Source: Basidiobolus meristosporus CBS 931.73 | Taxonomy: Eukaryota > Fungi > Basidiobolomycota | Direction of reading: 5' to 3' | DNA length: 64,000 nt | Assembly (NCBI GenBank): GCA_002104905.1 | Contig: MCFE01000195.1 | Location: 62,001-126,000 of the forward strand | In this document: positions 8,250 to 49,469 of the stretch, piece after piece | How the letters are laid out: every line of letters begins with the position of its first letter | How positions within the stretch are numbered: position 1 is the stretch's first letter | Translations under genes and position numbers: made by a program | Notes under the pieces: model-generated | The model's input: only the letters and a program-made list of their open reading frames with translations | Database searches by the model: none | What the model was told of the DNA's origin: nothing

Positions 8250-8293
8250 CTGAGTGGGAGTGTTGTAGAAATTTGTAATTCCACCTAAATATT

Positions 8294-11200
8294 TGTTGTA
8301 AAAATTTGTATTTCCATCTAAATATTAACCTAACTTAGTCACTTAGATCATTACCTTCAAATCCTAGAGAATACTGACCAAATTCCTTGCCGGGACTTAC
8401 TTAGAATATTTTCACCAAAATACCAGGTACCCAGAACATGAAAATTCTCAAAGTTGTCCAAACAGCCCCAAACTTTGCACACATGTTCTTGGGACCTTCC
8501 TTAACCTATCCTACGTGTTTGTAATGCAAAGACCAGGTAAAAGTATAAATACTACTTTTACATTCAATAAATCATTAAGTGAAAACCATATAATCTACTT
8601 GTCCTCCCAATCACTTCCAATATCTCCAAGACTCTTACAACAGGTTATGAGCCCCAAGCTGTCACTCTCTGCAATGTCTACTACTGCTATTACTGGAGTT
8701 TTCCCCTCTGCTGAAAAGTTGGATGGCTCTAACTACCAAGTGTGGAAGGTGAAGATGAAGATGCTGCTACAAGAAAGAGGCCTTTGGGATATTGTCATGG
8801 GAGAAGAATGCCCTCCTAAAAATGTGGGAGAGCAAGCCTTAAAGTACCAGAAGAAAGAACAAAGTGCCTTTAACTGCATTTGCCTTAATGTCAAGGACAA
8901 ATTGCTAATTCAATGCTCAAGAGCAAAAACACCAAAGAATGCCTGGAAAGCATTGGAAGACACCTACCAGTCATGTTCAGCTGCCAAGAAAATGTATCTG
9001 AGACAAAAATTCTTTACTACAAAGATGCTGCCAGGAGAAGAAATGAAAAATCTAATTAACAGAATTACCCTGCTGGTAGATGAGATGGAATCTGTGGGTG
9101 TACCAACTGCTGATGAGGATGTAATAGTTACCATCCTGAATAGCCTGACAGACAATTTTCAGGGCCTTGTATCAGCCCTAGAGTCCAGAACTGAAGATTT
9201 GACCTTAAATTACGTATATGGAAGGCTCCTGGATGAAGAATTAAGAAAATCAAGCGCCAATAAGAAGGAAGAAGAAAATGCTTTAATAAGCAATGATAAC
9301 CAACAAAGGAGGTACCCAAGACCCTGCAAAGGCAACAGCAACCTATTTTGCAACTACTGCAAAGGGAAAGGACACATATCAGACCGGTGTCTCAAAAAGA
9401 GAGATTATCAGCAATAGAAGCCAGAATATGGAAATGCTGCAACAACTGAAGATAGACTATTCATATCTGCACTAAATATGACCACAAACAAGGATTCTCA
9501 GATGTGGTATATTGACTCTGGAGCTTCTCAACACTTGACACACCAAAAAGAACTTTTTACATAATATTAAGAAATTCCAATTAAGAAGGTCTTCATGGGT
9601 GACAATAGAACACTTGATGCAGTGGGAGAAGGAACTATCCAAGTAAACCTTAGAAGCAGTGAAGGAAGCCATACACTGACCTTTAAAGAAGTACTCTATG
9701 TACCAGAAATAGCCAAGAACCTACTCTCTGTAAGCAAGGCCACTGCAGAAGGACTCAGTTTCAGTTTTGACAATTCTGGATGCAGGATCAATGATCAAAA
9801 TGGTGCCCATATTGCTTTGGGCATCAGAGATCAGAATCTATACAAGTTGACTTATAGACCATCATATCTGGAAGCCAATATAAGTAACTTAAATGAAGAA
9901 ACACCAATGCTTTGGCACAGGAGATTTAGGCACATCAATTTTGATTATTTATGTAAAATGATCAAGGATCAGCTAATTTCTGGAGTGAAAACTGATCCCC
10001 CAGCTAATTTGGAGCACTGTGAAGCCTGCATATATGGGAAACAAGCCAGACAACTGTTAAAGAGCTCTGGGTTAATCAAAACTAAGAAAAAATTAGATGT
10101 ATTTCACTCAGATCTGTGTAGACCTATACAAAATTTATCCTTTGGCAGGACAAAGTATTTGATCACCTTTATTGATGATTGTATAAGATACACATGGGTC
10201 TACTTCATGCAGAGAAAGGAAGAAGCTCTATCTGAGCTCAGGGAGTTTAAAGCCATGGTGGAGAGAGAAACTGGTGAAAAAATCAAGAAAATATGCTCTG
10301 ACAATGGTGGAGAATATACCTCAAAACTCTACATCCACTTCTGCAAAATTCATGGGATAAAGCAAGAGACTACTGTACCATACTCCCCACAGCAAAATGG
10401 AGTAGTAGAACAAGCTAACAGATCAATAATTGATATGGCAAGATCTATGATCCATGATCAAAAATTATCCTATGATTTTTGGGCGGAATCAGTTGCCACT
10501 GCTGTATATCTTAAAAATAGGAGTTATAACAGAATACTTAGTGATTCTACTCCATTTGAAGCATGGTATGGATACAGACCAAGTGCAGAACATCTAAGAA
10601 TACTTGGGTGTACAGCATACGCCAAAAAACTGGCCGGAAATCAGTCAAAATTTGAGCCAAAAAGTGTAAAATGCATATTTTTGGGCTACTGCAATGAGAA
10701 TAAGGCATACAGACTCTATAATACCAAAGCAAAGAAGCTGATCAAGTCCAGGGATGTGTTGTTTGATGAAAATTCAAAATTTTCACAAAAAATGACATCA
10801 GATGATGACAAAAATTTGATCTCAAGTCCACCAATTGTCAGGATTGAATTAGCGCAAAACAATGAAAATTTTTTCACTCCAGAGGACTCTACAACCGTGG
10901 TTCAGCCAGAATCAGTGCCCAGGAATATCCCAGAAGTGATCATTCCAGTATCAAATGCCTGGAGATCAAATGGGACAAGAAATAGCCCAAATTACTATAT
11001 CAATGAGGGTACAAACTTAGTCTATGCCTATTCAGTCCATATTGATGAACCCCAGACTGTAAAAGAGGCCCTAAATAGCCCTCAGACAAAGTTTTGGAGA
11101 TCTACAATCACCGGAAATGTCAGGCCCTGATGGAAAATCAAACTTGGGACTTAGTCAAATTACCAATAAACCAAAAATCAATTGGATGCAGATAGGTCTT

Positions 11201-12977
11201 CAAGACAAAATACAAGGCTGATGGTACAATTGAAAGATTTAAAGCAAGACTTGTGTCCAAAGGATACTCTCAAGCAAAAGGACTTGACTATACTGAGACC
11301 TTTGCACCGGTAGCCAAGTTTAAATCCATCAGATTAATATTGGCTATTGCAGCCAGATATAAGTATTTTATTCATCAAATGGATGTAAAAACTGCATTTT
11401 TGAATGAAGAACTTGATGAGGACATGTATATGGACCAGCCTGATGGGTTTGTTGACCAAGATAACCCCCATTTGGTCTGCAAGCTTAAAAAGTCACTATA
11501 TGGTCTCAAACAATCACTGAGAGCCTGAAATTGCAAGATAGAATCTTATTTGGAATCTTTGAGTTTCAAAAGAAGTAATGCTGACTATAGTATATACTAT
11601 AAGCCAGATAGAGCAAATCCAGTTCTATTAGCTCTATATGTGGATGATCTTATTATAGCCACCAATAACCTAGAAACATTGGAAGAGACTGAATCCAGCC
11701 TATCTAAGGAGTTCAAGATGTCTGATTTAGAAGAACTTAGTTACTACTTAGGGATTAAGTTCTCCATAGACAGAAGTACCCAGACTATCACCCTATGCCA
11801 ATCCAAGTATATTCAAGATATACTAAAGAAGTACCAAATGGAAGACTGTAAACCGGCAGCTACCCCAATGGAGACAAACCTTAGCTTGGTCAAAACTCAA
11901 CCAAATCAAGAGAGCTTGGTGCCATCTGAAAGCCCTGACTTTCCTTATCAATCTATAGTCGGCAGTCTGATGTATATCATGCTTGGAACATGTCCAGATA
12001 TCTTATATTCAGTGGGAGTTGTCAGCCAACATAATCAGAACTATGGATCTGATCATATTGGAGCAGTTAAGTGGATTTTTAGATACCTAAAAGGAACTGC
12101 TGATATTTGCTCAAGATACACTTATAAGGACTCAGAACAAGATCTTGTGGGATACTCTGATGCAGATTGGGGACAAAATTTAGAAGACAGAAGATCCACC
12201 ACCGGATACACCTTTCTTTACTGTAAAGGAGCAATTTCATGGAATTCAAGAAAGCAACCAACCATAGCACTTTCCACCACAGAGGCAGAGTATATGGCAG
12301 CCTGTGAAGCTACAAAAGAAGCAATGTGGTCAAGAAAGCTGTTTACAGATTTAGGCCTATGTCAAAAAATGCCTATTACTTTAATTCAAGATAATTGAGG
12401 ATGTATACAATTAGGTAGAAATCCAACTTTTCATGCTAGAACCAAGCACATAGATATTAGACATCATTTCACATGTGAAGCTATAGAGAATAACTTAGTA
12501 AGCTTAGTTTACTGTCCTACAGATGAAATGATTGCAAACATATTTACCAAACCATTAGCTAGAGACAAGTTTGAATATCTTAGGTCAAAATTAGGATTAG
12601 TCAGTATGAACATTTAGCTGAGTGGGAGTGTTGTAAAAATTTGTATTTCCATCTAAATATTCACCTAACTTAGTCACTTAGATCATTACCTTCAAATCCT
12701 AGAGAATACTGACCAAATTTCTTGTTGGGATTTACTTAGAATATTTTCCCCAAAATACCAAGTACCCAGAACATGAAAATTCTCAAAGTTGTCCAAACAG
12801 CCCCAAACTTTGCACACATGTTCTTGGGACCTTCCTTAACCTATCCTACGTGTTTGTAATGCCAAGACCAGGTAAAAGTATAAATACTACTTTTACATTC
12901 AATAAATCATTAAGTGAAAACCATATAATCTACTTGTCCTCACAATCACTTCCAATATCTCCAAGACTCTTACAGCA
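8294..12977 (+). mobile_element. Ty1/copia element B nested in the 3' LTR of A
   Basis: LTRs 8294-8642 and 12629-12977 (349 bp each, about 10 mismatches by eye). TSD ATATT at 8289-8293 and 12978-12982. PBS 8643-8655, PPT 12619-12628. Confidence 0.96.
8674..12617 (+). pseudogene. gag-pol: Copia B gag-pol with a few premature stops
   Basis: KLDGSNYQVWKVKM gag, CNYCKGKGHISDRC knuckle, SDNGGEY integrase, YVDDL RT, GYSDADW RNase H in ORFs 8515-9417, 9595-11130, 11253-11528, 11550-12398. Confidence 0.95.
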
Positions 12978-12982
12978 ATATT

Positions 12983-13522
12983 CACCTAACTTAGTTGCTT
13001 AGATTGTTACCTTAAAATCCTTGAGAATACTGAACAAATTCCTTGCTGGGATTTACTTAAAATATCTGCACCAAAATGCCAGGTACCCAGAATATGAAAA
13101 TTCTCAAAGTTGTCCAAACAGCTGCAAACTTAGCAAACATGTTCTTGAGACCTTCCTTAACCTATTCTACATGTTTGTAATGCCAATACCATGTAAAAGT
13201 ATAAATACTACTTTTACATTCAATAAATCATTAAGTGAAAACCGCAAAATCTTCTTGTCCTCCCAATCACTTGCAATATCTCCAGGACTCTTACAAAAAA
13301 TATCAGGTACCCAGAACATGAAAGTTCTCAAAATTGTCCAAACAGCCCCAAACCTAGCACACATTTTCTTGGAATCTTCCTTAACCTATTCTACATGTTT
13401 GTAATGCCAAAACTAAGTAAGAGTATAAATACTGCTTTTACATTCAATATATCACTAAGTGAGAACCATATAATCTACTTGTCCTCCCAATCACCTCCAA
13501 TATCTCCAAGACTATTACAACA
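12983..13522 (+). repeat. Remainder of copia A 3' LTR plus tandem duplication of its 3' 226 bp
   Basis: 12983-13296 continues the LTR begun at 8261-8293. 13297-13522 repeats LTR offsets of about 123-348 and ends TTACAACA before the TATAC TSD. Confidence 0.9.
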
Positions 13523-14462
13523 TATACAAGATCAATATTAGACCAGTACTTCTCTGCTAATATTTCTGCCACTCTTAACAATTCTAAGATTTTGCACTTG
13601 GTTGTCACTTGGGCTCAGTTATCCCATTTAAGAGTTTATTACACTTTTTTCTTGGATACAACAGTATCCATACAGTTAGGCTGCTTGGCATCTTGATGCT
13701 AAAGGTATAGGTATATCCATAGGCACATCTGCGCACCATATTTTGCAACTCTTCCTTGCTGTCCTCCATATGCCAACTCATCACATCCATGATGGGCTTG
13801 AAGGTAATGCCATTGATGGGATTGGATATGGCAATACAAGCACCTTAACTTATCTTTCTATCTCCCCTAACATATATACTGTAGGAGACTTCCAAAAGGT
13901 GGAGCAAGGTCCAATATTCCCTACACACCAAGCAGGGAGGAGAAGAGAAAGGACACAGTTGCAATAGAGATCTATACCACCAGATCTATGTCTGAAGTGT
14001 AGCTGCTCTAATCCCATTAAGACACCCCTGGAATGAATGCCATTGATATGCTAAATTGTTATAGATGATCCTCTTGTTGAGATATATTTCTACAATGCCA
14101 GCATATGACTGCAAATGCTTCAAACATATTCTGGGTAGATATTATATCCAAAGGCCACCATAGTAAATACATATCCACTTAATCTTGTCCTTTTGGTTGC
14201 TTTGTTGCCCATGCAAATGAATGTTGATTCAAGTTTGTGAGAAGTGTTTTTGGTAGTGGATACTCTGCAGTATCTTGCCTATACTTGTATACTTCTATGG
14301 TTTCTGAAGGGGCACATTTAGCTTGAAAAACCCTAGGTACAATTTGGTCATTGATATTGGATATTGCCCTATGAAGAATAATCTGGTCCTGCATTGGGAT
14401 CCAATACAGATCAGCCGTCAGGATCCCACAAGGAGGCCATGCTAATGCCAGCAGCTTGGAAT
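13523..14462 (-). pseudogene. CMC/EnSpm-like transposase relic (copy T1)
   Basis: 13690-13790 resembles 20640-20730 and 14310-14400 resembles 20910-20990 of the T2 transposase. Confidence 0.6.
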
Positions 14463-14840
14463 TGTTACAAGTCTTGGTATAAGAGTTGTAGAGGAATAGG
14501 GAGTTTAGCTAGTATTGTATTCACTAAAACTTGAACTGATTTTTATTGAGGTTCCAGCAGCTCCTTATATACATTTTGCCAGATCAATTGCTGACTAATT
14601 GTATTTCCTAATGTAGGTTGTGGCTGATGACTCATTTGATTGCATCATCATCACCCAATAAGATCCTACTTAATATATCTATTTCTGTCTGATAAGGATC
14701 TGCTGATTCATTTGCTGACTAATGCTACTGATTTCATAGATAATACTGATGTACTGATAACCTAAACATATACTAACTGATTTGACTAAAAACTGATCTA
14801 ACTTAAACATTCAAGCGGCAGATCATAACATTCTCCCCTA

Positions 14841-17800
14841 CTAAAGTTGAGAGGGTTCTCCTGAATCTCTTTTCTTGTGATACCAATATCTTGATGGTTC
14901 AGTATTATCAGCAAGTCTTGCAAGCTTGAGTCTGTCCCTATGCACTAAGTCTTCCCGGATATTGCCTTGTTTGTCCACCAGTTGGTAAGTTGCAAATGGA
15001 CATTCTCTGATGATCTTGAATGGTCCTGTCCATTGTGGCTCAAACTTCTTCCGAGTGTTGTTTCTTAGCAATACAAAGTTCCCAACTGTCAATGCTTCTG
15101 GTGCTATAGTCTTATCAAATCTCTGCTTCATCTTTTCTGCACTTTGAGATACTTTGGTCTGTGCCTCTTGACGTCTTTGTTCCAGTTGCTGGTGTCTACT
15201 TGGCTGACTGAGTTCATCTTCTAAGGTGTCTGTAAGCTTTGGTTGTGTGAGATCTCCTGGAATCCTTGGTTCACATCCATAAACTAAGTAAAATGGTGAT
15301 TGCTGGGTGGTGTTGTGTACTCTGACTCTGCATGCAAAGAGTGCTTGGTCTATATACTCATCCCATCTACTGACAACTCCATTTGCATACTTGGTCAGCA
15401 TTTTTCCAAATAATCCATTAAACCGCTCAGTGACTCCATTAGTTCTGGGGTGATATGCCGAGGTTTTCAAGTGTCTGATCTGCTGCATTTCCAGGTAAGC
15501 CTCTAATGTCTTTGCCATAAAGTTTGCACCTCTATCGGATAAGATCTCCACAGGGCATCCAAACTTCATCAGGATCTCATGGTAAATGAAACTTGCAACT
15601 TCTTGTTCACTGGCTATTGGTACAGCTTTAGCAACTGGCCATTTAGTGGCATGGTCAATTGCTACTAGGATCCAACGGTTGCATTTCCTGGTAGTTGGCA
15701 GTCTTCCAATAAAGTCAATTCCCCATCTCTCAAATGGTCTTACAGGCTCCAAAGGGAAGAGTTCGGCAATTCTTTGTGGCTGGCCTTGATTGATTTGGCA
15801 GTTTGGGCATGTTTTTACTAGCTTCTCAATGTCTTGTTTCATTCTGGGCCACCATGCTCTGGCTTTTACAAGGCTATAGGTTCCTTCAATCCCAAGATGT
15901 CCATATCCATTGTGTAGCTTATGTATTAAATCCAGGCGAGCAACATAAGGACAATAGGCAATAGGGCTTCCATCAACAATTCGGTAGAGTGTTTCATTCT
16001 GTACAACAAATTTGCTGGCCTCATCACGGATTATCTTCTTGATATCTTCATCCACCTCATTAGGAATGGCTTGGTCCTCCAAGTACTTTGGTAATAGGCT
16101 AGGCCAATCTGATTCATGCACCAAGTTGAGTTGTGCAACTTGATCTAATCTTGATAAGGCATCAGCAACCGTGTTGTTTTTTCCAGGACAGTAGACAATC
16201 TCCAGGTCAAATTGCTGAATGTATTCACTCCATCTTGTCATTCTTCTAGAGAGTACCTTCTGAGTAAATATATACTTGAGGGAGGCATGATCAGTCTTCA
16301 CAGTGCATTTGACTCCTTCAATATAGCATCTCCATGTCTTCAAACAGTGTATTATAGCAAGCATCTCCTTCTCATGAACTGGATAGTTTTGTTCTGCTGA
16401 GTTCAGTTTCTTGGATTCAAAGGCAACAGGGTAGTCCTTTCCCTCGTGTTCTTGGCTCAGCACTCCACCAATTGCATAATCTGAAGCATCTGTGCACAGA
16501 GTGAACTCTTTTCTGAAGTCTGGTATTCTTAAGCTTGGCAGCTTAGCAAGTTCATTCTTTAGTGTCTGGAAGGCAGTCTCACAAGCTATGTCCCACTTGT
16601 AGGTATTGTCTTTCTTGAGGATATCAGTTAAAGGGGCTGCAATACTTGCAAATGACTTGACAAATCTCCGATAATAGGAAACCATTCCAAGGAAGGATCT
16701 GAGTTCTGATATGCTATGGGGCTGCTTCAAATTCTTGATTACTTCCACCTTCTTGGGGTCTAAGGTTACTCCTGTGCTAGTCACTATGTGTCCCAGATAT
16801 TCTACGTGTTCCTTGAAGAATTCACACTTGGCTAGCTTGCCGTATAGCTTGTTCTCTCTTAGTTTCTTCAAGACCTTTTCAATGTGCACCATGTGATCCT
16901 TTTCTGTCTTGCTGTATATCAATATGTCATCCAGGTAGATTATCACAAACTTGTCTAAGTACTCCTGAAAGACAGTCTGCATCAGCGTCATGAATGTTGC
17001 AGGGGCATTAGTGAGGCCAAAACTCATGACTAAGTACTCGTAATGTCCATATCTGGTCCTGAATGCTGTCTTAGGGATATCTTCTGGTTTCACCCTAATC
17101 TGGTTGTATCCTGACATGAGGTCGATCTTGCTGAAAATAGTGGCTCCATTAAGTTGGTCCAAAAGCTCATCAATCCGAGGTATGGGGTACTTATTCTTGA
17201 CGGTAACTGAGTTCAGGGCTCTGTAGTCAATGCACATCCTAAGTGTTCCATCCTTCTTTTTCACAAAAAGCACTGGTGCTCCCCAAGGTGACTTGCTGGG
17301 CCTGATGTATCCTTGCTCCAATAGCTGATCAATTTGTTTCTTCATTTCCTCCAATTCCAATGGACTCATTCTGTAAGGTGTCTTGCTCACTGGAGGGCTA
17401 TCTCCTGTGTCAATGGCATGATCCACATCTCTGACTGGTGGTAGGCTTACAAGCTCATCTGGAAACACGTCTGAATATTTCTTCAAGAGAGTCTGGACCT
17501 GCTGGGGTGCTGGGATAGAGGAATCCTCCTGTAATACCGCCATGAGGAACATCTGGGTACCTTTTCTAAGTGCTCTACAGAACTGGGTCTTGCTAAGTTC
17601 ACTTGTCTCACACACACTGGAATTGACCAAGTTGAAATCCAGCCTGGCAGGTAATAGCTCATAGGTCTTGTTGTCTTTTTGGATCTGAGTAGCATGGGTT
17701 CTCCAGTTGATTGATGGATTACGACAAAATAGCCAGGTTTTCCCAAGTACAAGGTCAAACTTGCAGTTCCCAAATATATAAGCCTGTAGGTCTTCTTCAT

Positions 17801-18974
17801 AGTCATTGATCTTCATTCTTACTGGCTGGGTAATACGGTTGATTATGTGGGAGTTCCCATCAGCTGTGGAGACTGAAGTTGATTTGGTAGGTTCCGAGTT
17901 GATTCCAGCTTTCAAAGCAAATTGCTCTGACATGTACTCATGCGATGCTCCTGAGTCAATCATGATCTTGGCAGGTACTCCATTGATTGCTCCATTCAGG
18001 TACAATAACTTCCCTGAGTTTGAAGTCATTTGGGACAAGTACTCTTCTGTCATATGGAAGGTGAGTTCCGAGTCTTCTTCAAGCTCATCTTCCTCATTAT
18101 TGTGTTCATGGGACTCAATATGGTTGAAGGTTCTTGTTGGCTGGTGTCCATTTCTTCTCTGAGGGCAGTACTTTGCAATATGTCCCTGCTGGTGGCAATT
18201 GAAGCAAAGTCCTCTCTTCTTGCATTCTTCTGAGGAGGGATTCTTCTGCATAGCGTCTATTTCCATTGGTACTGCTTCTGATTGTCTTCTTTCATAATGA
18301 TTATAGCCTTTCTGACTAGTCACTGTAGGCTTCCCAACTCCAAACATAGCTGAGTCATAGTCAATGGCAATCTTGATGGCTTCTTCAATAGTCTGAGGTC
18401 TTCGGTAATTGACTTCCTTGCGAGTTCTTTCTTTCAACCCATCAATAAAGTATTCAACTTGATCCAAGGGGTCCATTCTTTCAATTTGTCCAAGTAGACA
18501 TCTGTACTCATAGATGTATTCTTGCACCATTCCTTTCTGTCTGAGTGTCTTTAACTTCCTTCTTAGTAGTGTCTGCTGGTGTGGAGGTTCAAAAGCATCC
18601 TGAATTTCCGACACAAACTCATCCCAGGTAGAGATTGTAGAGCATCCCATCATAGTAGCTGACCTGATCTTGTTGTGGTACCACTGTAAAGCTGCATCTG
18701 CCAGGTAAGAAGCTGCATAATGCAACTTGCTCTCTGGAGCAATTCCTTTAGCTTTAAAAGCTTCTTCAATCTGAAAGAGCCAAGTTCCCAGGTTTTCATT
18801 GACTCTGCCATGGTACCGGTTGACCTTCACACTAAAGTTGCTCTTGACAGGGCTTTGCTGGCTCTGAGCCATGGTAGTCATTCCTTGTTGCTGTTGGCTG
18901 AGGATCTGGAGTAGCTGTTGCTGTTGGGCCAGGATTTGCTGCATGGCATTCTTCCATTCTTGATTGTCCGACAT
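14841..18974 (-). CDS. gag-pol: Single-ORF Gag-Pol polyprotein, 1377 aa
   Basis: Capsid [23 protein letters not shown] knuckle, protease IDSGA, RT YLDD, RNase H TDASD, integrase HHCC plus GIDF/SDRG/ERFN, and GPF motif. No chromodomain. Confidence 0.97.
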
Positions 18975-19020
18975 CTTGAGGGTGGTTTCTTCTTTCTTCA
19001 GGAGGGAGGTTTCTGGTTAT

Positions 19021-19032
19021 CGCTGCTACCAA
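19021..19032 (-). promoter_or_regulatory. G1 primer-binding site (tRNA 3' end)
   Basis: TTGGTAGCAGCG is complementary to ...CGCUGCUACCA. Same site at 47454-47465 (-) and 31504 (+). Confidence 0.9.
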
Positions 19033-19400
19033 TGTTACAAGTCTTGGTATAAGAGTTGTAGAGGAATAGGGAGTTTAGCTAGTATTGTATTCACTAAAAC
19101 TTGAACTGATTTTTATTGAGGTTCCAGCAGCTCCTTATATACATTTTGCCAGATCAATTGCTGACTAATTGTATTTCCTAATGTAGGTTGTGGCTGATGA
19201 CTCATTTGATTGCATCATCATCACCCAATAAGATCCTACTTAATATATCTATTTCTGTCTGATAAGGATCTGCTGATTCATTTGCTGACTAATGCTACTG
19301 ATTTCATAGATAATACTGATGTACTGATAACCTAAACATATACTAACTGATTTGACTAAAAACTGATCTAACTTAAACATTCAAGCGGCAGATCATAACA

Positions 19401-20040
19401 GAATTAATAACTCTCTACACAATTGTATGACAGGATTCTACCAGTTTTCTGCTGACTTCACGGCCAAATAAAGTAAAAAACTTAATGGTGTTTAAGTGGT
19501 CTTTTGCCAACAGTTGCATAGCATTGTAACAGTCTTCATGTGCTCTACATTTATTTGAACTGATCCTGCTGACCAATACATCCAATTATCTTATATGGCA
19601 AGAAGCTTCAAAGTGTTCTGACAGCCTCCTTGCAAGCCCCCAATGGCATTATAATGGCAGTACAGGGGCCTAGAGCTAGTTCTGCATAGTGCTTCTGTAC
19701 CAATTTACCAGATAGTATTTCCTTTTCTGACCTCCCCTTGTGCCATTCCTATATCCATAGTAGAAGCACCCCTCCCTCTATACCTTGAGTATTCCACACA
19801 TAGTTCAGATCAAAATAAACTATGGCCACCTGCTGACAAACTTCCACATATATGCACACCCACTGCAATTGACACACTTCTATCACCTCAACTTAAGGCT
19901 TTTAGTGTGTCACTTGCAAAGTCACCATATACCTTGTATTGTGGCTAACATATGCATCTTGCAAGAATATGCTTGGCTGGTGCCACTCTTGCCATGAATA
20001 CCTCCAGATAATCCTCAAAGAGCTTTTAGTATTTAGCCAC
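19401..20040 (-). pseudogene. Possible upstream part of the T1 transposase relic
   Basis: Contiguous with 13523-14462 before G1 insertion. Only weak translated hints (CVNCSGCAY, FIWP). Confidence 0.3.
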
Positions 20041-20096
20041 TTTATTCCTTCTCCCTGCTGGATTCTAGTACCCTTATAGGTGCAATCTGACTCTTG

Positions 20097-20464
20097 TGTT
20101 ACAAGTCTTGGTATAAGAGTTGTAAAGGAATAGGGAGTTTAGCTAGTATTGTATTCACTAAAACTTGAACTGATTTTTATTGAGGTTCCAGCAGCTCCTT
20201 ATATACATTTTGCCAGATCAATTGCTGACTAATTGTATTTCCTAATGTAGGTTGTGGCTGATGACTCATTTGATTGCTTCATCATCACCCAATAAGATCC
20301 TACTTAATATATCTATTTCTGTCTGATAAGGATCTGCTGATTCATTTGCTGACTAATGCTACTGATTTCATAGATAATACTGATATACTGATAACCTAAA
20401 CATATACTAATTGATATGACTAAAAACTGATCTAACTTAAACATTCAAGCAGCCAATCATAACA
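20097..20464 (-). mobile_element. Solo LTR of the G1 gypsy family
   Basis: 368 bp, 8 mismatches to the G1 LTR by eye, 4-bp TSD CTTG on both sides. Confidence 0.96.
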
Positions 20465-20599
20465 CTTGTATGTGTGAGTTTGGTACTGAACAGTGTAGAA
20501 GCTGTCTGGTGACCAAGAGAAACCCTGCATTCTTGCTAAATCTGTCCTAATAAAGATTACTTGCTTGTGTCACCCAACCCAACATGCATTACTCAACTC

Positions 20600-22050
20600 A
20601 TTACCCATGCAATGCAGCTGCTTAGCTTCTTAATGCCATAAGCATAGATGTCTTCATGTGCACATCTGTTCTCTCTATTTTGCAACTCTTCCTGGCTGTC
20701 TGCCATGTGTCAACACATCACATCCATCCGTTGGTAGAAACAGCTATGGAAGTCCACTAGAATAACTACATGTCCAATTCACCTAGTTGTTGCATTTGTA
20801 TAGTCGCATATGCATATGAATGTTGATTGGATCCCATGAGAAGTACTCTGGGTAGCCAATACTCTGTATTATCTTGTCAGTTCTTGCAAATCTCTCCAGT
20901 ATCTCAAAGGGCACATTTAGCTTGAAATGGCCCATGTACAACTTGGTCATCAGTACAGGGATATTGATGAAAAGCAAATGCATTGCTCCTAGTGGAAAGC
21001 TTTTGCTCCAACAGATACCCTCTATTGTCAGTACCTCTGGTTTCCAATTAATTCCAAATTTCAGCCAATGGCTGATAGCCTACCAACTTTGCTGCAATTG
21101 CATGGTGACTTCTGTATGACATCACTGCAGGAAAATGATGTTTCTGATGTGGATGTTTGGGTAATAATAATTTTTGTGAGTTAAGGAGTAAATCCCCAAG
21201 ATCTCAAAGATTTGACAGTAATACTATCCAATGTGCCCAGAAAAGCTAGCTAATTTGCTGATGGCTGGGATATATCCAACACAGATCATAGGATGCACTT
21301 TGATATGATGGGCATTTGGTAGTATCCTCCCGAAAAGCATACAAAGTTCATCCAGCTAAGGATACAGGTAGCTATCCAGGTTGGAGGGTGATATAGGCCC
21401 ATACACCAACAAGACTACCATCAAATTTCTGCTCTGAAACTGCAAGATAAGCAGCAGTTTGAGACTGATGAGAATCAGTGGCCAGCAAGATTTGCTGGTA
21501 GAGTACTTGTTTCATGAGAGTACATCAGGTGCCAAGGCTAAGGCAAGGTCATACATACCTTCAAAGTAGCCCCTGCTTCTTAGTTGCTTGAAATGTCTGC
21601 CATCAATTATATTCAAAATGCTTGCACTTAACTTATACTGATTGCAGTACTTTATAGCTTCACAATATTTGTTGCACTGCATGTACTTCTTAAGACATGG
21701 TATTACTTGAATATATCTGGAGTGTGAACAATACTTTTCTCCAATGGTTGCGGATTCCTGATAAGCTAGACACCTTGCAATGGTGGCACTTTCTGATGTA
21801 AATGCCATGTAACTGTTAACACATGCTGGTATCAGGACAGTCTTGGTGTTGTATGCTGCCAGGCACATGACAGTTGCCCATGTGTACCATGTACATGATT
21901 GGTCAAATCCCATATTGATTTTGGCAAGAAGTAGTGGTAAATTCTCAAAGTCCCCATTACTGATATTAGTTGAAACATACCACCTCTCTAGCCACAACTT
22001 CACATCATTCACCAGTAAATGGATTACTGAGCTTACTTGACTCCATAAAG
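20600..22050 (-). pseudogene. CMC/EnSpm (CACTA-like, Transposase_21/tnp2-type) transposase relic, copy T2
   Basis: ORF 21512-22012 has IIDGRHFKQLRSRGYFEGMYDLALAL. Downstream broken frames read WPLILI..., GP..PSNLDSYLYP.LDEL, GYIPAISKLASFSGH and MHLLFINI, the usual motif series of this family. Confidence 0.75.
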
Positions 22051-22779
22051 CATCCTCTGCATTTGTTCAATGGGTGTTGTCTCATTGCATATTGGGACTT
22101 GACCAGGCTCATGCATGGTACTGATGTTAGGGGAGATAGGCTCACAATCCATCAGTGGGCCTTCATTTTCAGAGCTATTACTCTGCATGCCATATTCAGA
22201 AGGCTAAGGTGAGCCCAAAGTTATCACAAGCCTACCTGACTCAGTTTGCGCCAGGTGACAAGTGCAATCAGGTGCAGTTATAAAAGTATCAAGTGGCTGG
22301 CAAGATATTGTTGATACAGTAGTGCCAGATGAATGGTCAAATATGACTTGTGTGGCAAAACACTGGCCACAATCCTTGCAATACTTCCTATGCTGCCTGC
22401 ATGGTTCATTGCTTAGATGCTTGTTACAAAAGCCACATGGTCATGTTTCTCTTCTCTTATGTTGTTGAATCAATGTAGTCTTGTCCATGGGGCAAACAGT
22501 TTGACACCCAACAATGTAATGCTATTATACTACTTATTGGTCAGTACTCATGTAAATTTAAGACAGTCTTGTATTTGAGTCCTTGCACCAACTTGAATGT
22601 TCAATTCAATGATGACCCTCCATAGGAGGTATTATAGATAAAGTTGTAGCACCAAATACACATGTATATATAGCTCTATTTCCCTTTGGTTTGACTCACT
22701 TCCATATATATGCTGCCAAGAAATAAAGCAAAGTTGTCTAATTCCTAACCAACCCTCACTTTTGAAAGTAGCAGAGGTG

Positions 22780-24590
22780 TGGTTGAATAACTGCTTGCTC
22801 TGACATTCAGTGCAACTACCACGGCTACATTCAAAAAAGGCCAGCTTGGCAGTGTGCTCACTGTAGGTAATAATGCAGACTCCTGAGGCTCTCAGTCAAG
22901 CAGTCAATTGAAAATCTCTGCAGAGCTGCAGGCTGACCATAGTGTTCAGGCAGATTAGAATGTAGCACAAGCAACACCTTTGGTTGGATACAAGTAAGTG
23001 GCTGCCATACATCATCACCACCCATATTAGCTACTATATTGCCAGCTTATACCAAAGCATTAATGTAGCCATCAGGTGCAGTAGCCCATAGGATAGTATG
23101 TGAAGGCCCTGGGAAATTACAATATAGTCCAGAATCAGGATGAGTGGATAATATGTGTAGAGCAATCAATATCACAGGCAGAGAAGGCAGTATCTTTGCT
23201 GCAAAGAAGAAACCCAAGTAGCTTGGTGTCACAGTCAAGAGTTGAGCCATTTTGTATGTAACAGCAAGGGAACACAGTCTTTGAAGCACACCAACAGTGG
23301 CCAAAGATAAAGCCCACAGAAAAGCCTATCACAGCATGGTAGGGAGAGATTGTAGATTCTATTACAAAGCCTAAAAATCAAAAGACATTGAAGATCTTTA
23401 AGGCTGTAGAGTGCAATGATCAAGAGTGGGCAAATATCTAAGAAGCCATAAGAAGCCTAGCCTGCCATTACCTTAAGGCTGGCATACCTTGAGACCATCA
23501 GTAATTCAAGGCCAAGCCAGATGTGGTTGACTAGTTCCATGAGTATTATCCTAGATTAAAACAAGCAAACAAATCTTGGGCCAGCATTTTGATGCTAAGA
23601 AAGTGTCTCAAGAAGAGCAGAAACTATCAAAGGCACAAGTACAAGGGTGTAGTGGCTAAAATCCAGTGGCTTTCTCAAGAGCCTGTTACAAGGAGGGCCA
23701 AACATACTAACAAGAATCAAAGATGCATCAGGTAGTGAGAAGAGTGCCAAAAAGGGACAGGTAGGCAAACACAGATGGAATATCATATCATTAATCAAGG
23801 AAAAGGTGTTGTTCCATCAAAGAAGCACTTGTTCATTGAAGTACCTGGCAGTGATAGAAGTCAGCAGATTCCTTAGGAGCCTGACAAAACAAGGGCTTAA
23901 AGCTCAAAACAAGCAGCAAGAAAATGTCAGATTGTCAGTAGAGTGCCAGTAAGGGGCATGCCGGCCAAAGCAAACACATCAGAGCAGTATTTATCAAGGA
24001 GAAAACATAGCTCAATACAAGAAGCACTCAGACACATTAGCTGTGAAAGACCCAGCAGTGATAGAGCAATGGTTGTATAGAGAAAGGTCTGCCCAAGCTA
24101 GGGGTAGGGAAGTATAAGTTAAAAGCTTCTGCTCCTGCCAATTAATGACATTAGCCTGGAACAGGTAAAATCCCAACATAGCCAAGAAGAATTACCAATA
24201 AGACAAAAGCTGTTTTCACAAGAGTTGGAAGTGCCATCAGTTGAGCTATACTCCAGTGAGGTAGATGAGTTTGCAGAGAAAGGCAACTTGTCTACCACAA
24301 CCTCCATGTCCTGCATTGTAAATAGGGTATAGATTGTGCCAACAGACATAGGAACAATATCAAGAATTCAAAAGAGTGTCATAATTACTACAGTGGAATT
24401 TTAGAACATTAATAGGCACACCAAAAGGTGCAGCACTTCTTCAAGAGCAGTGCTCAAGAAAATACACTTGAAGATTGCAAGGATCTATTGCAATGACTGA
24501 CAGATGAGGTTCCAGACCTTGTAGTACCAGCTGAAGACCAGGTTGAATGGGGCCCAATGAATGAACAGTGGTATAAAGCTCTAAAACCCA
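22780..24590 (+). pseudogene. Uncharacterised repeated ORF 'R' relic, copy T2 (divergent from the transposase)
   Basis: Collinear with ORF 37272-38111 plus 39298-39820, with 51150-52850, and inverted with 27850-29800. Confidence 0.8.
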
Positions 24591-25105: not shown

Positions 25106-26080
25106 TTACTCTGTATAATGCTCCTGACACATTTGTCTCAGTGGATAGCTTCTTATATGAGTATACTGTACATCAATAAGTATCATATATATTTTACATG
25201 TTCTGCTGTGTTGTTCCATATATGATTTTCCTCTGAATTTATCTGTCAATATGCTGGATCTCTTTAGATATCCAAATGTATGCTCCACTCTCACTCTGAA
25301 ATGATTAAGTATCTTGTTGTTGAGCTTCAGCTTCTTGCTTAGTACTCCATTCCTTGGCTTCTTATAAGCTTTGATACATGCTGATCTCTGACAATCCTTT
25401 CCTATATAAGCTAAGTCTGTCATACACTTCTCCCCTCCACAGAATTCTGGATGATTCTCTACCAATTGTGCTTTGTCATTTTGGTCCACAGTACTTGGTG
25501 TAGATCTCCTCTAATGTGTCAAACAGACACTCAGTGTTAGTGATGACATTGCTGAGAACCATTCAGATGAGTGAGTCATATCAAAACTGGTATCTGATTG
25601 GGCAGAGGTGATATGAATTGATTTGGTGCACTCAGCTTAGTTTATCTGATTTTCCATTCATTATAATTAAATTTCATTCATTTGCCATTTATGCCATCAT
25701 TATGACACGTGTATCATCCCTAAACAATGGCTTGGTGACGGTGTTGATGAATTACTCACAGGTCTATGATCAAATTGGAAATCTGCAATTGATGTGATGT
25801 GATTCATGTCAATACAATCTTAGACGCTTCATCCATAATATATGGAAAATTCAACAAACACTTTAATATTAATATATATATCATATAAGACCAGGTTGAT
25901 GCCAGTATACCACTGTGAAAGTATCCAAATCTATAACTATGGTCCCTATACCATGCATCAACTCATCTCTAATACAGCACAGACAAAACCCATCCACTAG
26001 CTCACAAGCATGGTCCAAACCAGTAAAGTAATATTGGATCTGTTTGAGCACTTGCCAAATGTGTTTAGCATGGCCCAAGT
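25106..26080 (-). pseudogene. PIF/Harbinger/ISL2EU-type DDE transposase relic (DDE_Tnp_4-like)
   Basis: ORF 25106-25489: DLAYIG...YKKPRNGVLS..LNNKILNHFRVRVEHTFGYLKR. Upstream fragment 25881-26078 has VDG and HG.G.IV.D motifs. No TIR or TSD found. Confidence 0.7.
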
Positions 26081-27849: not shown

Positions 27850-30800
27850 TGGTAGCTACAATACCGCACCTGATCATTCTTCACAACTGCGGATTGCACC
27901 ACACACCTTGGCATGGAACAAAGGAACAAGTCTAATTAGTATGTCTCCTACTACACTCTGTTTCCATGACTTTGGCAGGAACCCTACGGCTTTATGCCAC
28001 TGTGCATTCACCAGTTCTCGTACATCCTAGTCTTCAGCCAGCACTAAAAGGTCCAGAACTGCATCTGCCAGTCATTGCAACAAATCCTTGTAATATTAAA
28101 GTGCATTTTCTTGATTACTGCTGTAGAAGAAGTATTGACACCTCTTGGTATATCTATTGATGTCCCAAAATTCCACTGAAGGCAATGTGATAATCCTTTG
28201 AGTTCTTGACATCAATACTTAGTCTATTGGTGGGATCTCCACTGTGCCAACAATGGAGGAAATGGAGGCTGTTGAAGATAAATTGCCATCCTCTGCATAC
28301 TCCTCTACCTCACTGGGGTGTGGCCCAACTGCCTGCACTTCCTACTCTTGTGACAGCAGCTGTTTTCTTTTTGGTACTCAATGGCTATGATAAAATTCAA
28401 CTTGCTCTGGGCTTAAGGCGTTAGTTAGCAAGAACTACTCCTTCTTTCTCATGCTTCCCTGTCTCTGGCTTGGATAGACTTTTTCCCTTTGCATTTTGCT
28501 TATCAGCACCAGGTCTCTCACTACTATTTTATCTGAGTGCTTTTGTAATGAACTATATCTTATCCTTGATAAATGTTGTTCTGATGCATTTTTTTTGGCC
28601 AGCTTGTCCCTTGCAGGCACTCTGTGGTCAATCTGACACTTTGTTCATGCTTATTTAGAGCTCTCAGCCCATGCTGTGATAGGCTCCTGAGGTAGCAACA
28701 GGCTTTATCACTGCCAGGTCCTTCAGTGCTGTATTGACTGTGTGCTTCTTGAGAGGAAGTACACTTCTCCCTTAGTAAATGTTGTGCTGGTGTATCTGTG
28801 TCTGCCTGCTTTCCTTGTATTAGCACCCCCTAGCTACCTGATGTCTCTTTGCTGCTTGTTTGAAGCTTTTGGCCCTAATTGTTGCTAGCTCTGGAGGAAG
28901 CTGCTGGTTTTTGGCCAATGCACCCTTGTTCTTCTGCCTTTAGTAGTTTCTGCTATCCTTGAGATACTCTCAAAGCATACCTATGCTGGCCCAAAATCAA
29001 TTTGCTAGTTTGCATCCAGGATAATGCTCATTAAAGAAGTCAAGCAAATTCTGCTTGGCCTTTAGTTCCTGATGGTCCTATGGTATGCAAGCCTTAGATG
29101 TTGGCATGTTAGACTTCTAACAGCTTCTTGAATATTCAGTCCAGTCCTCCTCATTGCACTCAACAACTTCACAGATCTTCAATGCCATTTGATTTTTAGG
29201 CTTTGGTATAAGCCCTACATAATCTCTGCCTCATGCTGTAATTGGGTTTTCTGTGAATCTCATTGTTGCACACTGTTGTTGTGCCTCAAAGACTTTACAT
29301 TGTTCCCCTGCTATTGCATCAAGATATGGCTGAGCTCTTGGCTGTGACACTAAGCTACTTGAACTCCTTCTTTGCAGCAAAGATATTGCTTTCTTAAGCT
29401 GGGATATTGACTGCTCTACACTTATTATCTGTACACACTGTCTTAGGACTATTTCATGATTTCCCTGGATTATTTCATCTATCCTATCAGCCACTGCACC
29501 TGGTTGCCTATTAATGCTTTGGTATAAGCTGGCAACATACTTGTTGATACTGGTGGTGGTGATTTTATGATAGCCACATGGTGGTCTTCAACTGAAGATA
29601 CTACCTTTGATACATACTCTTCTGCCTCAGCATTATGGTCAGCTTGCAGCTCCACAAAAATTCCAAATTGCCCACTTGACCAAGAGCCTGAGGAGGTTGC
29701 ATCATTACCTTCATTGGGTGCACTGTCAAGAGGGTCTTATTTGGTTGTATCCACTCATCTGGCACTGAACGTCAAAGTAAGCTGTTGTTCAAGTGCTCTA
29801 CTGCTGCTATCAGTGGTGAGGTTTAGCTGAGAGCAAAACAACTTTGTGTTATTTTTTGGTGGCAAATATATGGAAGTGTGTCAAGCCACAAGGGTAATAG
29901 TGTAACATCTGTTCTTCTGCTGCTGTCAGTGGTGGAGTTGGGTTGGGAACCAGACAACTTTGCCTTATTTCTTGGTGGCATATATATGGAAGTGAGTAAA
30001 ACTAAAGGGCAAATAGTGTTACATATATGTGGGTATATGGTGCCACAACTTTATTGAGAATGCTTACCATGGTGGGTAATCATTGAATCTTACACTCAAG
30101 TAGGTGCAATGTCTCATATACAAGACTGTCTTAAATTCACATGAGTATTAGCCAAAAAGTGATATAATAGTGTTACATTGTTGAAGGTCAAACTGTTTAC
30201 CCTGTGGACAACACTTCTTTGATTCAATGCCATAAAAGTAGAGAAAAAAACCATGTGGCTATTGTAGCAAGCCTCTCAGTCATAAAGCATAAAGACACAA
30301 TAGGAGGTATTACAAGGATCACAGCCAGTGCTTTGCCACACAAGTCATATTTGACAAGTCATCAGTCACTACTGTGCCAACATTATCTGACCAGTCAGTT
30401 GATACTTCTATATGGGCACCTGACCATTGTGGAAGGGTAAAAATACCTCCCACAGACAAGTTTATACAGATAGCTGTTATGATGCACTTATCCGTATTTT
30501 ATCTTGTCAGTATTATCCCTTTCTTCTTTTGGCCATATTATCAGTATTTTCCCCATATGATATTTACCCTGATTAGTTATTAGCATTAGTTATCCCAGAT
30601 GTTATTCAGCTTTGCAATCAGTCTATGTATCTACATTAGGCAAATACCCGCATCAATATACATAAGAAATGACCTAAGTTTGTGTTACCATCTAAGCTAG
30701 AGAAGTAGAAGCTTTTACCATAGTGACATATTGACAAAGACACCAGCAGCTTAGACCCAGAGGTTATTGCACCCATCAGACATCTTACACACCTTGAGTA

Positions 30801-31134
30801 GTGTAACTTCTCCCAAGAGTACCTCTACACCACCATATTGTCATTGTAACCTTGTACAGATTGAGTCAGGTGTGTATGTGATGCCTTTAGGCTCACCTCA
30901 GCCTTCTCTATATGGCATGCAGAATGATAGCTCTGACAAAGAAGTCTTATTGAAGGACTGTGAGCCTATCCCCCCTAACAACAATACCATGCATGAGCCC
31001 AGTCAAATCTCAATAAGCTATGAGAGAGCACCCATTGCAACAAATGCCAAGGATACATTATGGAGCCAAATGAGCCCAGTAATTCATCCACTGGTGAATG
31101 ATGTAATGCTGTGGCTAGAGAAGTGGCATGTTTC
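27850..31134 (-). mobile_element. Inverted copy T3 of the CMC-like element (R relic, spacer, transposase start)
   Basis: Reverse complement is collinear with about 21975-24590. The transposase start (VNDVMLWLEKWHVS, + strand) is cut at 31134 by G3. Confidence 0.85.
30428..30837 (+). repeat. Internally deleted solo LTR, distant relative of the CpG-site LTR family
   Basis: Starts TGTGG and ends CACCACCATA. Shares ATTAGGCAA.TACCCG and CCAGAGGTTATTGCACCCA with 34948-36021, and is absent from the homologous T2 position. Confidence 0.6.
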
Positions 31135-34100
31135 TGTTATGATCTGCCACTTGTATATTTAAGTTAGATCAGTTGTTAGTCAAATCAATTAGTTATAGGT
31201 TTAAGTTATCAGTATATCAGTATTATCTATCAAATCAGTAGCATTAGTCTGCAAATGAATCAGCAGATCCTTATTAGACAGAAATAGATATAATAGGTAG
31301 GATCTTATTGGGTGATAATGATGCAATCAAATGAGTCATCAGCCACAGCCTACATTGGGAAGTACAATTAGTCAGCAATTGATCTGGCAAAATGTATATA
31401 AGGAGCTGCTGGAATCTCAATAAAGATCAGTTCAAGTTTTAGTAAATACAATACTAGCTAGACTCCCTAGTCCTCTACAACTCTTATACCAAGACTTGTA
31501 TCATTGGTAGCAGCAATAATCAGAAACATCCCCCCTGAAGAAAGAAGAAGCCTCCCTCAAGATGTCCAAAAATCAAGAATAGAAGAATGCTATGCAACAA
31601 GTCCTGGCTCAGCAGCAACAGTTACTCCAGACCCTTAGCCAGCAGCAACAAGGAATGACTACCATGGCCCAAAGCCAGCAAAACCCTGTCAAGAGCAACT
31701 TTAGTGTGAAGGTCAACTGGTACCATGGCAGAGTCAATGAGAATGTGGGAACTTGGCTCTTCCAGATTGAAGAAGCTTTCAAGGCTAAGGGAATTGCTCC
31801 AGAAAGCAAGTTACATTATGCAGCCTCTTACCTGGCAAACACAGCTTTACAGTGGTACCACAACAAGATCAGGTCAGCCACCATGATGGGATGCTCTACT
31901 ATTTCTACCTGGGATGAGTTTGTGTTGGAAATTCTGGATGTCTTTGAGCCCCCACACCAGCAGACACTACTAAGAAGAGAGTTGAAGACACTCAGGCAGA
32001 AAGGAATGGTCCAAGAGTACATCTATGAATATAGATGTCTACTTGGGCAAATTGAAAGAATGGACCCTCTGGATCAAGTTGAATACTTTATTGATGGGTT
32101 GAAAAAAAGAACTTGTAATGAAGTGAATTATCAAAGACCTCATACTATTGAAGAAGCCATCAAGATTGCCATTGACTATGACTCAGCTATGTTTGGAGCT
32201 GGGAAGCCCACAATGACTAATCACAGAGGCTACAATCACTATGAATGAAGACAATTAGAAGCAGTGCCAATGGAAATAGATGCTATGCAGAAGGATCCTA
32301 CCTCAGACAAATGTAAGAAGAAAGGACTTTGCTTCAATTGCCACCAGCAGGGACATATTGCAAAGTACTGCCCTCAGAGAAGAAATGGACACCAGCCATC
32401 AAGAACCTTTAACCATATTGAAGACATGGAGCATAGTAACATGGAGGATGAACTTCAAGAAGACTCAGAACTCACCTTCCATATGACTGAAGAATTCCTA
32501 TCCCAGATGACCACAAACTCAGGAAAGCTATTATACTTGAATGGAGTAATCAATGGAGCACCTGCCATGATCATGATTGACTCAGGAGCATTGCATGAGT
32601 ACATGTCAGAGCAACTCAATTTGAAAGCTGGAATCAACTCAGAACCCACCAAATCAACTTCAGTCTCAACAGCTGATGGGAACTCTCACATAATCAACCG
32701 TATTACTCAGCCAGTAAGGATGAAGATCAATGACTATGAAGAAAATCTACAGGCCTATATATTTGGGAACTGCAAGTTTGACCTTGTACTTGGGAAAACC
32801 AGGCTATTTTATTGTAATCCATCAATCAACTGGACAATCATGCTACTCAGATCCAGAAGCACAACAAGACCTATGAGCTATTACCTGCCAGACTGGATTT
32901 TAACTTGGTCAATTCCAGTGTGTGTGAAACAAGTGAACTGAGCAAGGCACAGTTCTGTAGGGCACTAAGAAAAGGCACCCAGATGTTCCTGATGGCAGTA
33001 TTACAGGAGAATTCCTCTACTCCAGTACCCCAGAAGGTCCAGACTCTTTTGAAAGAATATTCAGACGTATTTCCAGAAGAGCTTGCAAGCCTACCACTAG
33101 TCAGAGACATGGATCATGCCATTGAAGCAGGAGATAGCCCTCCAGTGAGTAATACACCTTACAGAATGAGTCCATTGGAGTTGGAAGAGATGAAGAGACA
33201 AATAGTTCAGTTACTGGAGCAAGGATAAATCCAACCCAGCAAGTCACCTTGGGGAGCACCAGTACTTTTGGTGAAGAAGAAGGATGGAACACTTAGCATG
33301 TACATTGACTACAGAGCCCTAAACTCAGTTACTGTGAAGAATAAATACCCCATACCTTGGATTGATGCGCTCTTGGACCAACTCAATGGAGCCACTATTT
33401 TCAACAAGATTGACCTCATGTCAGGATACAACCAAATCAGGGTGAAGCCTGAAGACATCCCTAAGACAGCATTCAGAACCAGATATGGACATTACAAGTA
33501 CTTAGTCATGAGTTTTGGCCTCACCAATGCCCCTGCAACATTCATGACCTTGATGCAGACTGTCTTCCAGGAGTACTTAGACAAGTTTGTCATAATCTGC
33601 CTAGAAGATATGTTGATATACAGCAAGACAGAAGAGGATCACTTGGTGCACACTGAAAAGGTCTTGAAGAAGCTAAGAGAGAACAAGCTTTATGGCAAGT
33701 TACCTAAGTGTGAATTCTTCAAGGAACATGTTGAATATCTGGGACACAGCGTGACTAGCACAGGAGTAACCTTAGACCCAAAGAAGGTTGAAGTTATCAA
33801 GAATCTGAAGCAGCCCCATAGCATATCAGAGCTCATATCATTCCTTGGAATGGTTTACTATTATTGGAGATTTGTCAAGTCCTTTGCAAGTATTGCAGCC
33901 CCTTTAACTGATATCCTCAAGAAAGACAATACCTACAAGTGGGACATAGCTTGTGAAACTGCCTTCCAGACACTCAAGAATGAACTTGCTAAGCTGCCAA
34001 GCTTAAGAATACCTGACTTCAGACAAGAGTTTACTCTGTGCACAGATGCTTCAGATTACTCAATTGGTGGAGTGTTGAGCCACAAATACAAGGGAAAGGA

Positions 34101-34947
34101 CTACCCCATTGCCATTGAATCCAAGAAACTGAACTCAGCAGAACAAAACTATCCAGTGCATGAGAAGAAGATGCTTGCTATAATACACTGTTTGAAGACA
34201 TGGAGATGCTATATTGAAGGAGTCAAATGCACTGTAAAGACTGATCATGCCTCCCTCAAGTATATATTTACTCAGAAGGTACTCTCTAGAAGAATGACAA
34301 GATGGAGTGAATACATTCAGCAATTTGATTTGGAGAGAGTTGTCTACTGCCCTGGAAAAAACAACACAGGATGAAATACTCTACTGTGAATTGTTGATGG
34401 AAGCCCTATTGCCTATTGCCCGTATGTTTCTTGCCTGGATTTAATACATAAGCTAGACAATGGATATAAACATCTTGGAATTGAAGGAACCTATAGCCTT
34501 GTGAAAGCCAGAGCATGGTGGCCAAGAATGAAACATGACATTGAGAAGCTAGTGAAATCATGCCCAAATTGCCAAATCAACCAAGGCCAACCACAGAGAA
34601 TTGCTGAACTCTTTCCCTTGGAGCCTGTTAGACCATTTGAAAGATGTGGAATTGACTTTATTGGAAGACTGCCAACTACCAGGAAATGCAACCATTGGAT
34701 CCTAGTAGCAATTGACTATGCCACTAAATGGCCAGTGGCTAAAGCTGTACTTATAGCCAGTGAACAAGAGGTTGCAAGTTTCATCTACCATGAGATCCTT
34801 ATGAAGTTTGGATGCCCAGTAGAGATTCTATCCAATAGAGGTGCAAACTTTATGGCAAAGACATTGGAAGCTTACCTGGAAATGCAGCAGATCAAGCACA
34901 TGAAAACCATGGCATATCACTCCAGAACTAATAGAGTCACTGAACGG
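31135..34947 (+). mobile_element. Degenerate, 3'-truncated gypsy G3 (G1 family)
   Basis: 5' LTR 31135-31503, PBS TTGGTAGCAGC at 31504, broken gag-pol ORFs 31592-34947 homologous to G1. Ends inside integrase with no 3' LTR. Confidence 0.93.
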
Positions 34948-38111: not shown

Positions 38112-38202
38112 GAAGCACTCAGACAAAGTAGCAGTGAAAGACCTAGCAGTGATAAAGGAAATGGTAAAGGGAAAAATGTCTACTCAAGCCTGAGACAGGG
38201 AG

Positions 38203-49468: not shown

Positions 49469-49469
49469 A

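Follow-up and report, generated by a model that had tools for sequence, protein, structure and literature searches.

DNA transposons of the CMC/EnSpm (CACTA) superfamily combine a Tnp2/Transposase_21-type transposase with a second protein, the two being co-directional or alternatively spliced. In maize En/Spm the second protein is TnpA, a DNA-binding, end-bridging product that arises from the same transcription unit as TnpD. Two-gene organization recurs in MuDR (mudrA/mudrB) and in PIF/Harbinger (transposase plus a Myb-like ORF1), where a second, non-catalytic protein is required or of help and the two genes are not always co-directional; these systems use other transposase superfamilies and other accessory protein families than those considered here. 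CMC elements have been assigned by the domains PF02992, PF03017 and PF03004 (Muszewska et al.), and additional genes, some opposite to the transposase, are frequent in DNA transposons of fungi (PMC12730594). The expansion of CMC/EnSpm in Basidiobolus, one of the two largest DNA-transposon expansions of this fungus, has already been published (PMC5751038). Here we describe a stretch of 64,000 nucleotides of Basidiobolus meristosporus CBS 931.73 (contig MCFE01000195.1, positions 62,001 to 126,000), referred to below as the window and numbered from its first letter. Basidiobolus is a gut-associated early-diverging fungus, and to our knowledge the gene content of its CMC/EnSpm elements has not been described so far. 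The window holds six pieces of one repeat family in which the relic of a transposase gene and a large open reading frame (ORF), called ORF R or simply R, point away from each other. On balance, we favor the reading that these pieces derive from an old CMC/EnSpm-type (Tnp2) family with two divergent genes, a shared center of ~0.5 kb, and R as the second gene. CMC/EnSpm elements are themselves known; the modest new twist is a second gene that is lineage-specific, transcribed divergently and without a fold match.

Self-BLASTN of the window delimited the six pieces, which share 66-89% DNA identity. Copy 1 occupies 21420/21972-24583 on the plus strand. Relative to it, copy 2 (31134-27989) is inverted and 73-81% identical, copy 3 (49551-50323 and 51148-52822) is direct and 66-75% identical, copy 4 (37027-38201 and 39298-39816) is 77-78% identical, and copy 5 (40439-39953) is inverted and 80% identical, the latter reaching 89% identity to copy 4. 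Copy 6 (13662-14417) corresponds to 20599-21037, with a likeness seen only in protein (39-54% identity) or at ~70% DNA identity. These coordinates agree closely with those of an earlier note on this DNA, which had described the block 21975-24590 as recurring inverted, directly and as fragments, and its count of six pieces holds. The same note had judged the family to be old, and we concur: pairs of copies differ by 19-34%, every copy is broken, and the CpG observed/expected ratio is 0.04 in the family copies, compared with 0.08 in the whole window and 0.17 in a young Gypsy element. TpG and CpA are raised to 1.3-1.5 times expectation. Judged from base composition, this loss of CpG with gain of TpG and CpA reads as the signature of long-term CpG-methylation decay, and it suggests that repeats are strongly CpG-methylated in the source fungus. 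The six pieces are best explained as old, methylation-decayed, mutually nested fragments, none of which can still move. The recognizable parts of the copies are as follows.

20599-22440, minus strand: transposase relic of copy 1, ~610 codons, broken by several stops and one or more frameshifts; a deletion of ~360 bp relative to copy 6.
22441-22925, no strand: stretch between the divergent genes of copy 1, from first recognizable codon to first recognizable codon.
22926-24583, plus strand: R of copy 1, with many stops, traced by tblastn with the copy 4 pieces; homology to other copies ends at ~24583.
27934-29655, minus strand: R of copy 2, cut at 27933/27934 by a repeat ending AGACTT.
30251-31134, plus strand: N-terminal part of the copy 2 transposase, cut at 31134/31135 by a Gypsy long terminal repeat (LTR); an insertion of ~400 bp relative to copy 1.
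49499-50324, minus strand: transposase relic of copy 3, 38-55% identical to copy 1 in amino acids, abutting an old solo LTR (49112-49469).
51154-52855, plus strand: R of copy 3, cut at 52855 by an LTR-like repeat.
37027-38201, plus strand: 5' part of R in copy 4, the best-preserved copy, cut at ~37030 by a copia-type LTR.
39298-39924, plus strand: 3' part of R in copy 4 with the acidic tail, after an insert of ~1.1 kb; unconfirmed by other copies past ~39816-39836.
39953-40439, minus strand: 5' fragment of R in copy 5, 89% identical to copy 4.
13662-14462, minus strand: transposase fragment of copy 6, C-terminal half, with an intact Gypsy element (target-site duplication, TSD, GAAT) directly to its right.

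In copy 1, the transposase frames run on the minus strand from 22440 down to ~20599, and the R frames run on the plus strand from ~22926 to 24583. Copy 2 is the mirror image of this layout and copy 3 repeats it, and the divergent order of transposase and R that had been reported earlier is thus present as colinear frames in the three fuller copies. The first recognizable codons of the two genes are separated by ~485 bp in copy 1 (22441-22925) and by ~600 bp in copy 2; in copy 3 the distance is probably similar, by a rough estimate. The earlier note had put the conserved spacer at ~700 bp; the length found here is ~485-600 bp. In the comparison of copies 1 and 2, conservation of the central stretch does not exceed that of the remainder of the block (~80% DNA identity, 22268-22775 vs 30423-29916, against 73-81%), and no BLASTN alignment of it was obtained for copies 1 and 3. 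We presume that 22441-22925 holds a putative bidirectional promoter and/or the missing gene starts.

The flanks differ among copies and include a Harbinger relic, the AGACTT-ended repeat, a Gypsy LTR and the LTR-like repeat. Because the flanks, breaks and divergences all differ and both orientations occur, the two-gene unit appears to have moved by transposition, rather than having been multiplied by a single local duplication. We weighed the possibility that the pairing is a composite, in which R belonged to an unrelated repeat lying beside a Tnp2 relic and the block was spread by segmental duplication. Such an origin would agree with the failure to find termini and with the position of all copies within 40 kb of one repeat-rich locus. 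It is hard to reconcile with two orientations, different flanks on each side, a 19-34% difference between copies, and the independent breakage of each copy by a different insertion, and we regard it as distinctly improbable. Instead, we infer that transposase and R formed one autonomous mobile unit.

The transposase half of copy 1 is represented by colinear, stop-free pieces of the minus strand at 22207-22440, 22036-22203, 21515-22066, 21359-21511, 21227-21355 and 20786-21079. Three of them (21515-22066, 21359-21511 and 21227-21355) belong to a single frame with one stop codon between neighbors. When used in tblastn, the copy 1 pieces were found conserved in copies 2, 3 and 6, with protein identities to copy 1 of 58-71% in copy 2 and 38-55% in copy 3. 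Decay is heavy in its C-terminal half (20599-21227 and copy 6), where a deletion is also found. The piece 21359-21511 (minus strand) matches Pfam Transposase_21 (Tnp2, PF02992) at profile positions 44-94 of 213, with an E value of 3.5e-5 and a score of 23.6 bits, below the curated cut-off of 28.6 bits for this family. In our own reading by eye, its in-frame neighbors appear to carry on the Tnp2 pattern through colinear motifs. The Tnp2/PF02992 DDE core that identifies CMC/EnSpm (CACTA) elements is therefore present, as a weak, sub-cut-off match, and no KDZ or Plavaka model of Pfam was matched by the transposase pieces. The sub-threshold match at 21359-21511 and the colinear motifs together agree with the tnp2/Transposase_21-type relic seen earlier, and the transposase is very probably of Tnp2 type. 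A co-directional TnpA-type product, which marks En/Spm in the strict sense, was not found; R lies on the opposite strand in the three fuller copies.

R is best preserved in copy 4, where a frame of 289 codons (37242-38108) is open and holds a conserved domain and two basic repeats of ~69 residues. Colinear pieces of R flank this frame at 37005-37238, 39316-39549 and 39553-39924. The longest open stretch in 200 random 64-kb sequences, which keep the dinucleotide content of the window, was 229 codons. The other copies retain the R frames at 52-80% amino-acid identity, interrupted by many stops and few frameshifts; in copy 1, tblastn with the copy 4 pieces revealed colinear frames at 52-65% identity. 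Many of the stops fall at former W and Q codons, and third-position differences are slightly in excess in the deeper copy pairs. In copies 1, 2 and 3 the first recognizable codons of R lie at 22926, 29649 (minus strand) and 51154, respectively. At the other side, copy 1 diverges at ~24583 and copy 4 alone continues to 39924; no stop codon is common to the copies, because each is broken differently. The gene comprises at least ~570 codons.

To find relatives of R, we searched a library of 1.84 billion representative proteins with a profile built from the alignment of the stop-free R pieces (alignment A1), the search covering R ahead of its tail (pieces R3 and R4). Four matches were obtained and two were accepted as true relatives. 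The first, P0001, is a protein of 299 residues encoded on a 1.8-kb metagenome contig in ENA, and matches the profile with an E value of 8e-26; BLASTP aligned it to R at 37% identity over 144 residues without a gap (E 7e-35). The second, P0003 (KAK9738516.1, a partial 'hypothetical protein K7432_018440'), comes from a 1.2-kb contig of Basidiobolus ranarum, with a profile E value of 1.9e-6 and 39% BLASTP identity to R over 71 residues. The other two, P0002 and P0004, are bacterial Ig-like repeat proteins that match the R profile by six or seven short repeated stretches only, and were rejected. A word search with the R profile yielded nothing new.

These results bear directly on the possibility that R consists of chance open stretches in a non-coding part of a transposon. 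In its favor, all copies but one are full of stops and protein identity between copies (52-71%) lies below DNA identity. Against it stand the gap-free match of 144 residues at 37% identity to the independent protein P0001, a profile E value of 8e-26 against the whole library, and an open frame longer than any found in 200 of 200 simulations, and we consider the idea refuted in practice. Because the open frame exceeds all simulations, and because of the gap-free match to P0001 and the profile E value, R is to be regarded as a genuine selected gene. As judged from sequence comparison, it represents a real, selected protein family that is nearly absent from databases, the only named member of which is from Basidiobolus. 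The description of R in the earlier note as a divergent gene that could not be assigned is borne out: the gene is real, and the profile search, Pfam and PDB matched it to no known family.

No Pfam match was accepted for the R pieces, P0001 or P0003 in scans at E values up to 1, and PF03004 (Transposase_24) and PF03017 (TNP1) were absent from all of them. The R tail is likewise blank in Pfam. A sequence search of PDB with the R profile returned nothing, and in ESM Atlas the queries P0001 and R tail retrieved at most sub-threshold leads, to unnamed Mucoromycota clusters. AlphaFold, run on P0001 with a shallow alignment, predicted a long helix at residues 8-83 with a predicted local distance difference test (pLDDT) score of 96, followed by a disordered linker and a helical domain at ~135-235 with pLDDT 85-92. 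When folded alone from the window sequence, the domain adopted a three-helix arrangement with pLDDT 70-80. We read the helix at 8-83 of the P0001 model as a probable coiled coil. After the helical domain, R has two or three repeats of ~69 residues rich in K, R, Q and S, and its isoelectric point is 9.5-9.9 in the first half and ~5 in the acidic tail. The best explanation of these predictions is that R has a coiled coil at its N terminus, followed by a conserved helical domain (~145 residues), by two or three basic repeats of ~69 residues and by a tail that is acidic.

Both AlphaFold models, of whole P0001 and of the domain alone, were compared with PDB (Foldseek, a wide VIA search and a second VIA look) and with BFVD. 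The coiled coil of P0001 matched other coiled coils. For the helical domain, the best fold score obtained with Foldseek and VIA-align in PDB and BFVD was Z 5.0, which is chance level. Two candidate fold relatives of the domain, a BEN domain (8yzs_C, probability 0.28) and an FF domain (2doe; Pfam RhoGAP-FF1, E 0.18), were rejected as too weakly matched. Structure prediction, which the earlier note had put forward as a check, thus gives R a helical architecture, but no PDB or BFVD fold above chance.

The comparison with described elements frames what R might do. In common with CMC/EnSpm (CACTA) elements, the family combines a Tnp2/Transposase_21-type transposase with a second protein and is presumably abundant in its genome, which is Basidiobolus-like and contains many PIF/Harbinger relics; it differs in that R is not TnpA-like (no PF03004 or PF03017) and points away from the transposase. 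With maize TnpA, R would share a non-catalytic nature, a place in the same element as the transposase, a predicted dimerizing region and a basic half; the two have no sequence or fold similarity. By analogy, we propose TnpA as the functional counterpart of R, which is most likely the accessory protein of the element, with a TnpA-like role. In this scheme the ancestral element would have carried a DDE transposase and the lineage-restricted R, of at least ~570 codons, as its second gene, both transcribed away from a shared central region of ~0.5 kb that would act as a putative shared promoter and co-regulate the two genes. R would dimerize through its coiled coil, its basic half would bind the DNA of the element, and it may help to bring or pair the element ends at the transposase, as TnpA does for En/Spm.

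The main rival view takes R for a gene that was captured from the host or a foreign source and is carried as passive cargo, as in Pack-type or TET/JBP-carrying elements. Passively transferred accessory genes such as TET/JBP are documented for fungal EnSpm, Plavaka, IS3EU and hAT elements (PMC12730594), and no DNA-binding or transposition-related domain is recognizable in R. The TET/JBP-carrying EnSpm, Plavaka, KDZ and IS3EU elements resemble the present family in being multi-gene cut-and-paste transposons, some with genes in opposite orientation, as are the IS3EU transposase and alpha-kinase genes (PMC12730594). However, those families belong to Dikarya, not to zygomycete-grade fungi, and R is neither a kinase nor a TET/JBP dioxygenase: it has no Pfam match, and its predicted structure is all-helical, not a double-stranded beta-helix. 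Cargo status also sits poorly with the lack of any stand-alone cellular homolog of R among the 1.84 billion representatives, with the very small size of the contigs that hold its sole relatives (1.2 and 1.8 kb), as is typical of repeats, and with the conservation of the R half, which is at least as good as that of the transposase half (74.6% vs 65.9% DNA identity between copies 1 and 3). We therefore consider passive cargo unlikely.

Several results weigh against the two-gene CMC/EnSpm reading. The assignment to Tnp2 comes from one Pfam match below the cut-off, and the ~60 other stop-free pieces of both genes in all copies are blank in Pfam. A word search with a 184-residue transposase piece returned no relatives of 101-322 residues, a result that is silent on full-length transposases. 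The corresponding search with the 289-residue R piece found nothing, and the scans of JGI metagenomes turned up no relative. No tool applied recognized a DNA-binding motif in R. Inspection of the first recognizable codons revealed no ATG common to the copies at the start of R, and its start and stop codons are undefined. Finally, no terminus was found in any copy of the window, and consequently no terminal inverted repeat (TIR) or TSD that encloses both genes. Our search of the literature, which excluded Repbase reports, found no published description of the R family or of a divergent CMC layout. With these points taken into account, we still lean towards an old two-gene Tnp2 family. A bolder version, which we offer tentatively and would not expect to hold in full, is that R founded an undescribed accessory-protein family confined to Basidiobolus-type fungi, built of a coiled coil, basic repeats and a helical domain whose fold is absent from solved structures. 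It would be the obligatory partner of a whole CMC/EnSpm clade, expressed together with the transposase from a common bidirectional promoter, and might bind element ends like TnpA or counter silencing by CpG methylation.

Every copy end in the window is either a truncation by another repeat or a single-copy continuation without confirmation. On the R side a common end was not found: four copies lose their likeness within ~80 bp of each other, each for a different cause. On the transposase side, the likeness of copies 1 and 6 stops at 20599 and 13662, respectively, and no inverted match to the R side was detected there. As the earlier note had noticed, LTR elements landed in or beside the family copies: a Gypsy element at copy 6 (TSD GAAT), a solo LTR at the tail of copy 1 (20097-20464, TSD CTTG), a Gypsy element at copy 2 and a copia-type LTR at copy 4. 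The Gypsy-family insertions have clean 4-bp TSDs, which indicates that 13523-14462, 19405-20096 and 20469-24583 were formerly contiguous. The LTR-like repeat that cuts copy 3 (52855-53256) matches 36021-35617. A 15-base terminus beginning with AGACTTGTTCC occurs twice in the window, at 27919-27933 (minus strand) and 62638-62652 (plus strand), with 0 and 1 mismatch; the former marks the break of R in copy 2, next to an AAT/ATT triplet. The ~1.1-kb insert that breaks R in copy 4 only (38202-39297) shows neither a clear TIR nor a clear TSD. Within it are five short direct repeats of CCCCTTTAG type (38886-38974) and an open stretch of 120 codons with no Pfam match.

The window as a whole is a transposon graveyard. 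A Ty3/Gypsy element at 14463-19400 has identical LTRs of 368 bp, the TSD GAAT and a single open gag-pol frame of 1391 codons, and looks recently active. Its 99.6% identical twin (42896-47833) also has identical 368-bp LTRs, with the TSD CATG and the frame split in two, and an older inverted Gypsy copy is found at 31135-34954 (91% identity). A copia-type array of LTR-internal-LTR-internal-LTR structure spans 3929-12977, with two units that are 92% identical, and is followed by two more tandem LTR copies (12977-13296 and 13297-13522); unequal recombination between LTRs appears to have produced the array. Between the tail-to-tail copies 1 and 2 lies a PIF/Harbinger relic (25109-25510, minus strand; DDE_Tnp_4, E 6e-6), and another reverse transcriptase is present at 60108-60890. 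The second Gypsy element is flanked by a pair of direct repeats, 40894-41241 and 48776-49103, which are 69% identical to each other; they were considered as Tnp2/R pieces and rejected as another family. Rfam detected nothing in the window, and none of it resembled human DNA.

The decayed copies described here are dead fragments, without functional weight of their own. If the divergent pair is the standard unit of this family, R is probably among the most repeated genes of the genome, yet it is represented by two partial entries among 1.84 billion representative proteins. R would also serve well as a marker when such repeats are masked and classified. Many cut-and-paste transposons need a 'second protein', and if our reading is true, R would be a further independent answer to that need.

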